A DNA stretch of 63,297 nucleotides, the filler included, from Lenisia limosa (lineage: Eukaryota > Protista > Breviatea), in assembly GCA_001655205.1 (NCBI GenBank). It is 13 parts of 13 records of this genome, joined end to end, with 100 filler letters (N's around TTAATTAATTAA, not from the genome) between each part and the next. Parts side by side here need not be neighbours in the genome. Positions count along the whole stretch, not along the records: positions 38,312 to 44,979 come from LPNZ01005039.1; 12 more parts are not named here. One strand, given 5' to 3'. A model generated the notes under the pieces. The model did not search any database and had not been told where the DNA came from. It worked only from the letters and a program-made list of their open reading frames with translations. The position numbers and the translations under genes were made by a program. Shown piece by piece: positions 38,213 to 45,079 of the stretch (position 1 is its first letter; the number at the start of each line of letters is the position of its first letter).

Positions 38213-38398
38213 NNNNNNNNNNNNNNNNNNNNNNNNNNNNNNNNNNNNNNNNNNNTTAATTAATTAANNNNNNNNNNNNNNNNNNNNNNNNNNNNNNNNN
38301 NNNNNNNNNNNAAAAAAAAAAAAGATGGATATCATATGTGATGTTTATGAATGAAAAATTGAAAAGAGAGTCATTTAGTAGATTCTAGGGGGTTTCTG

Positions 38399-41300
38399 TC
38401 AGAGATCAAACCACATTTTTCCCCACACCCACGTTTTCTTGCCTCTCTTTGGTGTTCTCTTGCCTGCGCCAGCTTCACCCCACTTAGGTCCTTCCCACTC
38501 CTCAGAACTGACACTACTGACGTCGCTACAGTGTGAGTGACAAGGTGAAGGTAAATTGAACACAACAACAAAAAACCTTTCAACTTACAACGAGTAAAGC
38601 AATAAAACAAAATAGAATACAAAACAGAATTGATTCCCTCAGTTGGTAACCTTACCTAATCCAGTCCTCATCAAACTCTTCATTCGCGATCTTCATTTCT
38701 TCAAGCTTCTTTTCGAGTTTCATTTCCTTCAAATCTTCCGAAGATCCCCATCCGCCTGTTGACCAACTACCCTTGGCTACCTCCTTCTTCTCTTCATCCT
38801 TCTTGCTGAGCATTTCCTTCTTCTTTTCTTCAATTTTCTTTTCCTTCTTCATTTCCTTTAGATCCTCAGAAGAGCCCCATCCTCCGGTAGACCAGCTACC
38901 CTTAGCAACCACAGGCTTCTTCGCTTCTTTCATCGTCTTCTTTTCATCTTCTAATTTCTTCTTTTCTTCCTCAAGCTTCTTTTCCTTCAATTTTTCTTCT
39001 CTCTTCTTTTCCTTCTTCATTTCCTTTAGATCCTCAGAAGAGCCCCATCCTCCGGTAGACCAGCTACCCTTAGCAACCACAGGCTTCTTCGCTTCTTTCA
39101 TCGTCTTCTTTTCATCTTCTAATTTCTTCTTTTCTTCCTCAAGCTTCTTTTCCTTCAATTTTTCTTCTCTCTTCTTTTCCTTCTTCATTTCCTTGAGATC
39201 CTCAGAAGAGCCCCATCCCCCAGTAGACCAACTGCCTTGAGCAACAACAGGCTTCTTCGCTTCTTCTACCTTTATCGTTTCTTCTGCCTTCTTGGCTATT
39301 TCAAACTTCTTGACCTGCTTTAACTGTTCAAACTGATGGATCTCATTCTGCTTTTGCATTTCAAGCATCTTTTCTTTCCTCCTCTCTTCTCTCTTCTTTT
39401 CCTTCTTCATAACCTTTAGATCCTCAGAAGAACCCCATCCTCCGGTAGACCAGCTACCTTTAGCAACTGCAGGCTTCTTCGCTTCTTCTGCTTTCCTCTT
39501 CTCCTCTTCCCTTTTCTTTTCCTCTTCCAACTTCTTTTTCTCTTCTAGTTTCTTCTTTTCCTCCTCAGCCCTTTTCTGCTCTTCAAGCATCTTCATTCTT
39601 TCATCTGCCTTCTTCTTAACTTCTTGCAGCTTCTTTGCTTTCTCTTCCTCCTCCTGTTTCTTCTGCTTCTCTTTTAGTTTGCGCTTTGCTTCAATCACGT
39701 TTCTTTTGATTTCCACAGCCCTTCTTTCCTCTGCATGATTTACTTCCTTTCTTAGAAGAAGTTCCTTATTCTGGAGCGCCTTTCGCATCTCCTTCTTTTC
39801 GGCAATTCTTCTCTCCTCAGCAAGTCTCTGTTCTTCGGCAAACCTTATCTCTTCAGCAATTCTCCTTTCTTCAGCGTTTTTCTCTTTAGCTATCCTATTT
39901 TCTTCTTTTTTAAACATTCTTTCTTGGTATAAGAGTTGGTTCCTTGTTAGATTCTTCTCTCTTTCTTTTTCTGCATTTGCTTCTGCCAGCATCCTTTTTC
40001 TCTCTTCCTTCGCCATTCTTTTCTTTTCCCTCGCAACCATGTGCTCGGCCTTCATCTTCGCAATATCAGTTAGCATGTCTTCCTTTTCTTTCTCCACTTT
40101 GGCAATAGACGCCGCTGCTGTCTGTTCTTTTCGCTTTTCTACCTCACCAGACTTCCGCTCCACAGAAAGGGCCACTTTTTCTTCCTTAATCCTGAGCTCC
40201 TTCTTCATAAGGGCGATTTTGGCCTCAATAAGCTCCAACTTCACGGCTGTTGTTGTTGTGTCCTTTGGAACTGGAACCTTCTGAAGGGTGATTATCATTA
40301 TCACACCTACAAAANNNNNNNNNNNNNNNNNNNNNNNNNNNNNNNNNNNNNNNNNNNNNNNNNNNNNNNNNNNNNNNNNNNNNNNNNNNNNNNNNNNNAC
40401 AAAGTGTTGTATAATATAAGATATATTTGTGGGTCGATAAATTTTGAAGGAATACTAACCTTGGGAGTTTCGATGGGCATTGTAAGAGCCTAAATGATCG
40501 ATCACGAAGGGAAACATTATCCTGGAACTACCAAAAAAAAACATCCGAATGTTAACACCAAGTCTTAAAAATAGTTGACAGCATACCTGGGCCAAAAGGG
40601 AAGGGAAGAGAGGTGCGGAAAATTCAGGAATAACCACTACGGGAGCCGGGTCAGAACTATAAACAGCGGCTTCCATCAGACTTTCCACAAGCTCCTGACT
40701 GTCTTCAAGATCGTCCACCTTCATCGCCAATTCGAGGAGCAACGCCTTTTCATCAGCTTCAGGTTCTTCTTCATGGAGCACAGAAAGACTCTCAGAGACA
40801 AGAACAGACACAGGTTTCAGAGGAGGCAACTCCTTCGCCTTCTTTGACTTGATCGCAACCGGTGTTGATTTCCGTTGTGTTGGGGACGGGGCTGAGGGCT
40901 GCTGAGTGGCGACAGGGAAAACAGGCACCATAACACTTTCGGGCATTATGAACACGGGGGATGGTACGACTCGAGCCATCGAGGGAGATACTTCAAAATA
41001 CTTCTTTGGGGATTTGCCATTGGCCATAGGCTGTACACACGTGGGTTTCTGCTGGAGCTTCGGGAATTTCTTTCCAACAGTCTTGATACGAATGGACACT
41101 TTCGGTGTGGGTGAGAAATCTTTCGAAGAAGTTGACATAACAGTCTCGGTCTTCTCCGAAATGAATCCATCGGAGGTACTAATGGACTTCTTTGTGGACG
41201 TGATTGGCTTTAAGGGCTCTGCAGAGGCGGAGAGCTTTGGCTCAGTGATCTCGCTACTTGGCTCTTTGGATTCCGATGGCTTGAAGGGTTCCGATGAGGT

Positions 41301-44300
41301 TGAGAGTTTCTTGGATTCCAATGTCTCATCATTGCCGGAGTCTGACTTCGGGACAAAGGGGACTGCAGACACGGACGGCTTGAACGACTCTGATGACGTT
41401 GATAGTTTGGATTCCACTGTACCAGCAGGTTGGCTTGATTCAGCTTCTGAAGGTTGAACCGCAGCCTCCTCTACTGGTTTGCGTTGAATAGTGACACCAT
41501 GCTTGGATAAGGGCGATTCCGCGGGCTTGAAGGATTCAGAAGAGATTGAAAGCTTGGAAGCAGGGGACGCTGACGTGGCTCCAGCTGGTTTGAAGGGCTT
41601 GGAGGTGACTGACATTTTTGTTTCGTCTTCAATCTTCGCTTCTGGCTTTGGAATGAAAACCGTTGACGTTACTGAGAGCTTCTTAGAATTCGAAGGCGCT
41701 GACACAGTCTTATGGAAAGGCTTTGCTGTGACGGAAATGGTTTGGCCGCTTGAGGTTGTGATGGACAGCTTCTCCGGGGACTTAACTGAAGTCTTTTTCT
41801 CGAAGACGAAGGGCTTCGAAGAGACCGAGAGGGTTTTGGCAGGGCTGTGCTGGGGGGGAATATGCTTACTGGGTGAGCGAATAACTAGAGGGCTCTCATT
41901 ATTGTCACTACTTTCTCCACCGTGCTCTTCCCTTTCTTGGATGATCTCTTTGCCAACCTTTTCACTTTTCTTCTGGTCTTGATTCTCTTCAGATGGTTCA
42001 GAATTATCAGAAATAAGGGAGAGTTTGGCCATTTTCTCCTCGAGTGCAACATTGGATTCGGAAATTTCAGGTGTTGAAGTGGTACAGCTGGAAAGCTGTT
42101 CTTGAATCTTCGTCTCATCGGTCTTCACATCTTCTTTTTCTTCTTCCACAATCTCTTCGTTCTTTTCCTCCATAACCTCATCTTCGTTCTTTTCTTCAGT
42201 GATCTCATTGCTCTTATCAACAGTGTCTCCTTCCCTTCCTTCTTCTTCGGCTTCTTCCCTCTTTTCTTCAGTAATTTCTTTCTTATTTTTTTTTTCAACC
42301 TCTTCATCCTTCTCTTCAACTGTTAGCTTCCCTTCCTCCTCATCAATTCCTTCCTTCCTTTCTTCTTCAACTTCTTCCTTCCTTTCTTCTTCAACTTCTT
42401 CCTTCTTTTCTTCAACTTCCTCTTCCTTCTTTTCTTCAGCTTCTTCTTCCTTCTTTTCTTTTTCAACAACTTCTTCCTTCTTTTCCTCTAAAGAATTCGC
42501 TGTGGTCACAAGTGTTTTCTTTGGACTGTGAGGGGAGAAGGGGACGATTCTGGTCTGAGGAACAGAAGTGTGAGGCGATTCATGCTCCTTGTGAACAGCG
42601 TGGAGCTTATCAAGCTTTTTCGGAACCAAAACGGGCTTTTTGGTGGAATTGTGTTCGTTGACTCCTTCATCTCTCGTGTCCACATTTGTCTTCTTAGGTA
42701 CAGCGTCAACATGAGAAAAAGGCCGTTTGTACACCTTCTGGCTTCCAATGATGGTTTCAGTCTTGGGAAAAGCTTTGGTGATGGAGAAAGGCACAATGGA
42801 GGGCTTCTTGACCGTGGCCTCGTCGTCCTTTGCAACCGGAACCATGGGCTTGTCACTTGGTGGACCCTGGTGTTTCGAAGGTGATTTGTAGAACTTGGCT
42901 TTTCCGGTTGGTGTTCGAGGTGCAGCCAAGGTGTCAGCTTTCGGTTTAACTGAAAAAATAAAAATAAAATAAAAATTATAATAATAAAACAATGTGTAAA
43001 AACAGAAGTTTTTTTTTATTAACTGCAGCAAATCTTCATAAACTGAGAAGAAATGCCTACTTATTCCAGGAGAAGTGTCGTCATCTGAGCCCGAAAGTAG
43101 AATGGAACTATCACTATCCGAACCTTCTGGTTTCTTGATTTTTGGAGTGGGTACCAACTTTGCATTCTTCTTCTTGTCTTCTTCCTCCATCCTTTTCTTT
43201 TCTTCTGCCTTCTTTTTCACCTCTTCTTCCTTCTTCTTTTTTTTCAACTCCTCCTCTTCCCTCTTCTTGTTTTCAAGAATTTTTTTCTCGAGTTCTGCAA
43301 TTTTCTTCTCCTTTTTCTTCTTTTCTTCTTTCTTCTGTTTATCAATTTCCCTTTTCCTCTTTTCTTCCTCAATCCTTTTCTTCTTTTCTTCAATTCTTTT
43401 CCTCTCTGCTTCCTTCTTCTTTTCCTCTTTCTCAAACTTCAACCGCTCAGCCTCTTGCTCAATTATGTTCTTCTCGGCTTCTATCAATTTCTTCTCCTCA
43501 ATAATAGCGCGCTGTTCTTCAAGGCGGTTTTGTTCTTCCTCCAGGCGTTGGTGCTCGTCAGCGATGCGCTTCCTCTCTTCGTACCCCTCGTCCATTGGGG
43601 ACGGCACTCTGATGATGGGTGATGGTGACACGGAGAGTTCAGAAAGTTCTGGGGTAGACACCACAAAAGGGGAGTCGTCGCAATTGATACCGTCCAAACA
43701 GGGAACTGGATCTGGAGGGTAAGAAGGAAGCTGAAGTCAATTCAATCTTAAAAATGACGCCAACTCCTTTGATACACTATGAAAGAGTATATGACACATT
43801 AAAAAAAATGCCTGTCAAATTAGACTGATCCGAAGAACAAAGCAATATCACAAAACTATATAAATGACAAGAAAAAACAATATCACCTGCATACGTTTGA
43901 TAGGCGCAGAGAAGTCAAAGCCGGAAAGCGACTTATGGACAGCCTGGTCGTAAGACATGCTCACAGCCCTGAGGTTCTGCTGGATGTTTTCCGGGTCAAT
44001 ATTCTCGAGGCTTCGGCGGTCAATTAGTTTCCTTGATTTGATTTCTTCCTTGGTCATGATGAAGCCGTTGATGAGCACGTGTTTGCCCTTGAGAGTCATA
44101 AAGAGGCCTTCACTTCGGCTCGCAAAAAAAAGTGAATTTCTCAATAAATCCTCGAAAACTTTCGATATAATTTATTGTCATAAATTTAGTTATCAGGTGG
44201 TAAGATTGTATGCATGCCGTTACTCGCATGTTGTGGTGCTGTAAATGATGTAAAATAAGCCTTCTGAAATAGTTTTCCAACCCAAGTTACAAAATTTTAC

Positions 44301-44650
44301 CGCCTGGTTCTCAAAAAATCCTTCAAACCTGCATAAGACACACCGCGATATCCATATCCGATGCAACAGACAGAATCTGTGAATGATAATAAACCAAAAA
44401 AAGTGAGCTATTTTATAACTATTTTATTATGTGTAGGGCTCCACTTCGGTTGGAAAAAAAGACAAAATTTGTCAATAAATCCTCGAAAACTATCCATTTT
44501 TCCCAGGGTTTTTCGAACCGAAGTGCAGCCCTAATTATGTGCCCCCGCCCCTTGCAACCTTCGCTTTGTTGAGATAGCTTCGGTTTTCAGCTGATTTGGC
44601 TTGAAGAGCGTCGGAACGCAGCGCCTCTCTCTGTTCGGGGTGCATATCTA
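38399..44650 (-). CDS. ~1,700-aa largely disordered/coiled-coil protein with a tandem PAM2-like array, five SWSTGGWG repeats and a Trp-rich tail
   Basis: Exons joined in phase: ~44087-43886, 43732-43061, 42949-40587, 40280-38656, 38525-38399 (SDVSSVSSEEWEGPKWGEAG...KKTWVWGKMWFDL*), plus likely upstream exons near 44380-44330 and 44650-44560. The two long ORFs in the track are exons of this gene. An 84-N gap lies in intron 40586-40281. Confidence 0.75.
38730..39465 (-). repeat. Coding tandem repeat; 168-bp (56-aa) period for three units, five GSWSTGGWGSSEDLK cores
   Basis: Cores at ~38746, 38875, 39043, 39211, 39433. Confidence 0.9.
44434..44533. mobile_element. Family A MITE, 100 bp, with a perfect 8-bp target-site duplication
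   Basis: attatgtg|tagggctccacttcggttggaaaaa...tttttcgaaccgaagtgcagcccta|attatgtg; 23/25 TIR match. Confidence 0.92.
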
Positions 44651-45079
44651 GCAGGTAAAACTTGATTGTTCCTTTTAAAATACACAATAAATATAGTATC
44701 TGCTGCTCCGCATCAACCTTGTGATTAATTAAAAACCTTGTGATTAATTAAATTTGGGTCTTTTTGCCTGTAAAACAGTGTATAAATTGCTTGATTTTAT
44801 CTTTAATACTGTTAAAGTGATAGATTTTAACTTTAGTTACTGGTCCCTCATAGAGTAAGTGAAACCTGCTGCCAAAAAGAAGAAAAAAGAAAAAAAAAGA
44901 AAAGAAAAAAAGAAAAAGAAAAAAAAAAGAGCCCCCGGGGTACCGGTACCCCGGACTATTTAATTGTGTTTTTTATTTTNNNNNNNNNNNNNNNNNNNNN
45001 NNNNNNNNNNNNNNNNNNNNNNNTTAATTAATTAANNNNNNNNNNNNNNNNNNNNNNNNNNNNNNNNNNNNNNNNNNNN

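Follow-up and report, generated by a model that had tools for sequence, protein, structure and literature searches.

The window analysed here is a 63,297 nucleotide (nt) stretch of DNA, filler included, from Lenisia limosa (assembly GCA_001655205.1), and the subject of this report is its piece at positions 38312-44979 (record LPNZ01005039.1), which is one intron-containing eukaryotic gene on the minus strand. The gene is real, transcribed, spliced and restricted to its lineage, and both of its ends are incomplete within the piece. At least 1,583 residues are encoded there, the full protein being longer, and the product is very long and mostly non-globular. It carries ten peptides of the PAM2 type, the motif through which proteins bind poly(A)-binding protein (PABP), and five identical tryptophan units set between charged helices, and might serve as a multivalent scaffold of messenger ribonucleoprotein particles (mRNPs). 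Unless stated otherwise, the exons, introns and motifs below lie on the minus strand and are described in the direction of transcription, from high to low coordinates.

Structure and expression of the gene

Contigs from two public runs, a poly(A) RNA library and a second run taken to be DNA, were aligned over 38320-44250. Those of the second run, called the DNA run below, have an even depth of ~32 and continue through introns, and thus behave as genomic DNA of the same organism. Contigs of either kind demonstrate presence, not absence, and holes in their coverage prove nothing. An RNA contig of 1,642 nt spans 41085 to 39165 and crosses the junction between two open reading frames (ORFs) of 1080 and 550 amino acids (aa) that the first-pass annotation, made from the sequence alone, had assigned to a single spliced product. 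As this contig crosses both joints in frame, the two ORFs are exons of one mRNA. Four canonical GT..AG introns are present, three observed as RNA joints and one deduced from a contig end and depth. For the junction between the ORFs, predicted to run from 40587 to 40280, the donor proved correct (CAG|GTATGC at 40587/40586), whereas the acceptor lies 3 nt later, at 40277, and a micro-exon of 30 nt had been missed; the protein changes by ten residues only.

Exon A (43061..43711) follows a strong phase-1 acceptor at 43712/43711 and is covered from 43061 to 43651 by an RNA contig that starts exactly at the donor; upstream of 43651 there are no RNA contigs in the aligned region. The earliest in-frame ATG of this exon is at 43595, and its product consists of a short non-repetitive N-terminal stretch, a helix of ~150 aa rich in E, K and R, and a Ser/Asp stretch. 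The contig end exactly at 43061, together with RNA depths in the next two bins that equal the expectation for the remaining 84 nt of the exon-A contig resuming at 42949, identifies 43060..42950 as an in-frame intron of 111 nt (GTAGGC..TTTCAG) inside the 1080-aa ORF. That ORF, taken previously to be one exon, reads through this intron.

Exon B (40587..42949) is an open frame of 787 codons with RNA contigs on 42227-42715, 41311-41494 and 40586-41085. It encodes, in order, a disordered region rich in K, P and S, an acidic E/K block, the array of PAM2-type motifs, more disorder and two short acidic helices. At 40906, within this exon, the RNA contig has A (29 of 29) where the genome and the DNA run have G (A in 0 of 32.6), which on the coding strand is a C>U difference that changes ACT (Thr) to ATT (Ile). 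This is most likely an allele, the RNA and DNA being different samples; editing is possible.

The intron that follows exon B (40490..40586, 97 nt, GTATGC..TTTAG) is an RNA joint with checked splice sites, and leads to the 30-nt, phase-0 micro-exon (40460..40489), which encodes ALTMPIETPK and lies between two RNA joints of one contig. Skipping of the micro-exon would preserve the frame (..LLAQ|VPVPK..) and both forms could coexist; the form that includes it is the only one observed. The next intron (40278..40459, GTTAGT..CAGAAG), also an RNA joint, holds the assembly gap of 84 N (40315-40398). A DNA contig crosses this gap with 27 fewer letters, so that the N run is an overestimate by 27 nt, and in an independent European Nucleotide Archive (ENA) contig, L001, found via the window's own ORF call P0001, 57 nt (L001:4489-4545) that end in 13 C fill it; the poly-C run probably accounts for the Ns in the scaffold. 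The RNA contig skips the gap, which hence hides no exon, and the stop-bearing exon for which the gap was to be checked is absent from this intronic sequence. An alternative acceptor, TAG|GT at 40307, was rejected, as in phase 0 it leads into TGA and is unused by the RNA.

Exon D (38656..40277, ~540 codons), with RNA contigs on 39165-40274, 39004-39194 and 38656-38865, encodes ~260 aa of charged helical sequence, followed by the five tryptophan units with charged helices between them. Its donor, AG|GTAAGG at 38656/38655, had been predicted to bypass the stop of the 550-aa ORF, and the resulting intron (38526..38655, 130 nt, GTAAGG..CTGTAG) is indeed present as an RNA joint with checked splice sites. 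The 3′-most RNA contig consists of 210 nt on 38656-38865, 93 nt on 38433-38525 and a remainder of 145 nt with no match in the window. The 93 nt constitute exon E (38433..38525), which encodes SDVSSVSSEEWEGPKWGEAGAGKRTPKRGKKT and ends at a GTGGGT donor. Where the contig leaves the genome, the genome reads AAAAC|GTGGGT, with the GT donor at 38432, and the RNA depth over 38320-38432 computes to zero (mean of 10.9 in bin 38320-38517, which equals 25.4 x 85/198). Given this divergence at a GT and the zero depth, the C-terminal tail read previously from 38399..38432, WVWGKMWFDL followed by a stop, is probably an intron or retained-intron reading. The GWW-like "TWVWGKMW" end, which had suggested the comparison with Upa2, is likewise probably intronic. 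The frame probably continues, as ..KRGKKT|CGWKKQEGG.., in a further exon outside the piece, so that the true C-terminus is off the piece. S/F-rich ORFs on the plus strand were set aside as mirror images of the K/E-coding strand.

PAM2-type motifs and tryptophan units

Alignment, a codon table and a shuffle test together define nine PAM2-like repeats at 41109..41831, with the pattern [LIM]-S-[VITA]-[ST]-[SA]-x-x-F-x-P, a spacing of 20-49 aa and, usually, a preceding Lys. PAM2 has been defined as --Phi-(P/V)-A--F-P, in which Asn or Ser occupies position 4, Ala and Phe are invariant at positions 7 and 10, respectively, and Pro is the usual residue at position 12 (PMC2854688). Position 3 is hydrophobic, usually Leu and occasionally Pro or Phe, Asn is found more often than Ser at position 4, and position 5 is Pro, Val or Thr (PMC2854688). 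In the repeats, position 3 is L, I or M and position 4 is Ser in all nine copies, position 5 is V in four, T in three, I in one and A in one, position 10 is Phe in eight and Leu in one, and position 12 is Pro in seven. The conserved columns are therefore the PAM2 contact positions 3, 4, 5, 10 and 12, together with position 7, which is substituted. The tenth motif, FKPSVSAVPFVP, conforms in full to the canonical PAM2 (P3, S4, V5, A7, F10, P12) and overlaps a repeat, as the pair LSTSSESFKP / FKPSVSAVPFVP at 41349..41405, in the arrangement of PAM2-N and PAM2-C of eRF3. The earlier count of about ten such motifs thus holds, as nine repeats and one canonical copy. In the shuffle test, the strict PAM2 pattern was observed once against 0.003 expected per protein, and a relaxed pattern seven times against 0.002-0.011.

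The conserved residues are specified by varied synonymous codons, with TCA, TCC and TCG for Ser4, CTC, CTT and CTA for Leu3, and CCA, CCC and CCG for Pro12, and the linkers between the repeats are unalignable and have no residual similarity. Synonymous variation within the motif and diverged linkers argue that the copies are old and that the motif residues have been retained. Readings of the repeats as SxIP, RVxF, B56 LxxIxE, ABBA or LIR motifs were rejected by inspection, as the spacing of the residues does not fit.

The five tryptophan units, GSWSTGGWGSSEDL, lie at 39417-39458, 39195-39236, 39027-39068, 38859-38900 and 38730-38771 (span 38730..39458). The number of repeats agrees with that given previously, and the peptide is identical in all five, at spacings of 74, 56, 56 and 43 aa. 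Units 2 to 4 fall within a young tandem repeat of 168 nt with copies 95% identical, whereas units 1 and 5 are old. A comparison of these two old units gives 10 synonymous and no non-synonymous changes in the 17 core codons, and 1 synonymous and 8 non-synonymous changes in the ten codons to the left of the core, a contrast that clearly shows purifying selection on the tryptophan peptide. Both sets of motifs, PAM2-type and tryptophan, thus look selected. Tryptophan is absent from residues 1 to 1,289 of the spliced product, and every tryptophan is located in the five units or in a short stretch that follows them (DEDW, EEWEG, PKWGE).

For the last 291 residues of exon D, AlphaFold2 run on the single sequence predicts helices of 33-58 residues, with a predicted local distance difference test score of 80-95, that are interrupted exactly at the tryptophan units by low-confidence loops of 16-17 residues. 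The predicted template-modelling score of 0.26 indicates that these helices have no globular packing. E, K and R make up 54-71% of the charged helices and hydrophobic residues 14-26%, with a best a/d occupancy of 0.21-0.50; in the protein as a whole, 36% of the residues are E or K. Single alpha-helices have few hydrophobic residues, whereas coiled coils have hydrophobic residues at the a and d positions of the heptad, and what was described before as K/E coiled coils could be single charged helices instead. For the end of exon B, AlphaFold2 predicts disorder apart from two short acidic amphipathic helices (ADEKALLLELAMKVDDLEDSQELVESLMEAAVY, 40659..40757), modelled with low confidence from the single sequence, which are a possible further binding element.

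Homology searches recovered only the gene itself. Word-index searches of 5.8 billion proteins with the PAM2 region, the GW region and residues 251-403 returned the window's own ORF call P0001 or nothing, an exhaustive phmmer search of 1.84 billion representatives found nothing beyond that ORF call, and scans of Joint Genome Institute (JGI) metagenomes, with protein and with a 30-nt RNA continuation, found no relatives. Pfam reported no domain on the exons or on single motif peptides, and no RNA-binding domain. The sole match of the motif peptides in a sequence search of the PDB was to a fibre protein at E=1 and was dismissed as chance. In a feature search of the ESM Atlas the scores were <=0.81; a PAM2-carrying USP10 cluster came second at 0.64, too weak to count. 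At current sensitivity the protein is, as judged from these comparisons, an orphan.

Upstream of exon A, a candidate 5′ coding exon (43895..44099, MTLKGKHV...SAPIK) can be read from the sequence; its AAC|GTATGC donor is in phase 1 and fits the phase-1 acceptor of exon A. No RNA contig covers this candidate, and Pfam and Atlas searches gave no match. Just upstream of it lies what looks like a very high-copy repeat similar to a miniature inverted-repeat transposable element: a hairpin element of ~100 nt at 44434-44533, with 25-nt inverted arms that are 92% complementary, has an 81%-identical partial copy at 44104-44166, 331 nt away, and the DNA contig depth in bin 44062-44250 is ~7,700, against ~32 elsewhere. 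Near the upstream edge of the piece there are also a perfect 19-nt tandem duplication (two copies of AACCTTGTGATTAATTAAA, 44715-44752) and a long A/G-rich homopolymer-like tract (44874-44930).

A putative multivalent scaffold and its alternatives

We lean, tentatively and at somewhat less than an even chance, towards the protein being a multivalent mRNP scaffold with two motif arrays, its binding partners and its role in mRNPs being inferred. The ten PAM2-type peptides of the central disordered region, one of them canonical within an eRF3-like pair and the other nine repeats that mostly have Ser7 (7/9), would bind by avidity to the MLLE domain of PABP, or to that of a UBR5-type ligase, and an array of this size could engage more than one PABP molecule simultaneously, whether these sit on a single poly(A) tail or on several. 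In the C-terminal half, the long charged helices are predicted to be interrupted every 43-74 residues by flexible loops with S-W-S and G-W-G, and these loops might dock into a second partner that has tryptophan pockets like those of CNOT9, PAN3 or the PIWI domain of Argonaute. An independently evolved GW182-type adaptor, in which the ten MLLE-binding peptides clamp the PABPs of a poly(A) tail, the five rigidly spaced double-tryptophan loops recruit Argonaute or CCR4-NOT/PAN3 and Ser7 is a phosphorylation switch on PABP binding, is also conceivable, and we consider it unlikely.

Several observations weigh against a scaffold of this kind. Ser occupies position 7 in seven repeats out of nine, and the only two with Ala there lack Pro12 or Phe10. 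The side chain of Ala7 faces the MLLE surface, where a bulkier residue would be unfavourable (PMC7356810), which makes Ser7 a real caveat, although a PAM2-like motif of Unkempt with one deviation still binds PABPC (bioRxiv 10.1101/2023.09.20.558714). The Pfam PAM2 model PF07145, which is very short and so a weak test, matched none of the peptides (21-32 residues), the canonical one included, at E<=10. The Argonaute-binding sites of TNRC6 have two tryptophans >=10 residues apart in flexible sequence (PMC9262622); those of the unit here are closer, as W-x4-W, so that Argonaute is the less likely partner. Between units the spacing is 43-74 residues, across predicted helices. No homologue was found in the searches, and the codon comparison within the protein takes the place of one among orthologues. 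Lastly, RNA contigs are almost missing over 41086-42226, a region that includes the PAM2-like array, and the major isoform could lack that array.

Some of these points would be expected if the resemblance to PAM2 and GW motifs were coincidental, the protein being a fast-evolving structural or cytoskeleton-associated protein, built of charged helices and disordered regions, whose repeats bind other partners, for example vesicle-coat or motor adaptors. We regard this as a serious possibility, though one that on balance probably does not apply. Ser in place of the invariant Ala7 in most copies, the lack of a Pfam PAM2 match, the absence from the Pfam results of any RNA-binding or other domain, a W-x4-W spacing unlike that of the TNRC6 sites and the 36% of E or K all accord with it, and short motifs based on Trp and Phe are also read by coat and motor adaptors. 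It leaves to chance, however, that the conserved columns correspond one for one to the PAM2 contact positions, and that one copy is canonical and placed in an eRF3-type overlap, for which the chance expectation is 0.003. Moreover, S-W-S and G-W-G in Gly/Ser surroundings are the usual context for ligands of tryptophan pockets.

The thin RNA coverage raises a different alternative, namely that the two motif arrays are mostly on different proteins because alternative splicing, an exitron at ~41086-42226 or separate isoforms remove the PAM2-type array from the abundant mRNA. RNA depth is ~0 over 41092-41289 and 41686-42081 and 3.4 over 41290-41487, the lone contig inside the region (41311-41494) has a depth of 3.8 against 29-39 in the flanks, and the 1,642-nt contig ends at 41085. 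The array is thus joined to the tryptophan repeats by the uninterrupted 787-codon frame of exon B and not by a bridging RNA contig, and it is by way of this frame that the combination announced previously, of a multi-PAM2 array, GW/WG-type motifs and charged helices in one transcript, stands. The drop might reflect sparse coverage at this place, alleles too divergent to pass the 95% cut-off, or an alternatively spliced exitron. An isoform without the array is nonetheless improbable as the main explanation: no joint is reported across 41086-42226, one RNA contig does lie inside the region, the 787-codon frame is unbroken, the motif codons are constrained, and a hole in contig coverage is no proof. 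An artefact of assembly or annotation, for instance chimeric low-complexity K/E contigs, is a very improbable account of the locus. There are loose ends or chimeric joints in K/E-coding contigs (for example, 42158, 42470 and 38795>43220), and contigs break at the 168-nt repeat, but two independent assemblies (the window and ENA NODE_3075) agree, two DNA contigs (3,164 nt and 1,788 nt) agree with the window at <=1 mismatch, and the four introns have canonical GT..AG ends.

For now, the multivalent scaffold is offered as a good hypothesis and not as a discovery, the evidence being at the level of motifs. Few proteins have more than two PAM2 motifs and, were PABP binding real, this would be, to our knowledge, the most multivalent MLLE ligand, and would combine PAM2 and tryptophan motifs by the same logic as GW182 or Upa2 without detectable shared ancestry with either. 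If the protein were in addition a GW182-type adaptor, the scaffold logic of small-RNA silencing or deadenylation would be rebuildable from short motifs alone in a lineage-specific orphan. Short motifs spaced at fixed distances on loops between rigid charged helices would be an unusual mode of presentation, and with Ser in place of Ala at position 7 the strictness of that PAM2 position can be tested directly.

Comparison with known systems

The closest known systems include GW182/TNRC6, the animal miRISC adaptor, with its silencing domain, and Upa2 of Ustilago maydis, a multi-PAM2 scaffold that functions in endosomal mRNA transport. The searches found no sequence similarity to either, as the first-pass annotation had stated. 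GW182 shares with the Lenisia protein the presence, within disordered sequence, of a PAM2-type PABP-binding peptide and of tryptophans that have Gly, Ser or Thr as neighbours. Such tryptophans of GW182 recruit CCR4-NOT (CNOT9, NOT1) and PAN2-PAN3, and those of its N-terminal domain bind Argonaute. GW182 differs in having UBA, Q-rich, RRM and N-terminal GW-rich domains, none of which Pfam found here, in having one PAM2-type motif against ten, and in having dispersed GW repeats >=10 residues apart, against five identical W-x4-W units between long helices. Upa2 resembles the Lenisia protein in its great length, in being largely disordered and in combining several PAM2 motifs with a C-terminal region that is helical, but has four PAM2 motifs against ten here, and depends for endosomal targeting on a conserved GWW at its extreme C-terminal end, whereas there is no GWW in the spliced product of the Lenisia gene, whose true C-terminus is off the piece. 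Lacking homology, the defining domains and a GWW, the protein belongs, on these comparisons, to neither the GW182 nor the Upa2 family. Multiple PAM2 motifs are exceptional apart from Upa2, with its four (bioRxiv 10.1101/455378). All four genuine PAM2 motifs of Upa2 are dispensable for its function (bioRxiv 10.1101/455378), which advises caution in inferring function from motifs.

For individual motifs the nearest parallels are in other PABP partners. The overlapping pair, LSTSSESFKPSVSAVPFVP, resembles the N-terminus of eRF3/GSPT1, in which PAM2-N and PAM2-C overlap (PMC2854688); the F-x-P of the first motif provides positions 1-3 of the second, with Pro at position 3. The differences are that the first motif of the pair has Ser7 here and that the Lenisia protein has no GTPase domain and no homology to eRF3. 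PAIP1, PAIP2, ataxin-2, USP10 and Unkempt have a single PAM2 beside folded domains, in contrast to the ten in this protein, with no recognisable domain. The PAM2 peptide of PAIP1, LMSKLSVNAPEFYPSGYS (PMC12102759), aligns residue for residue with the repeat KLSVTSTVFIP and also lines up with KLSTSSEPFKP, so that the register K-L-S-V-x-[A/S]-x-x-F-x-P is common to repeats of the array and to the KLSVNAPEFYP of PAIP1.

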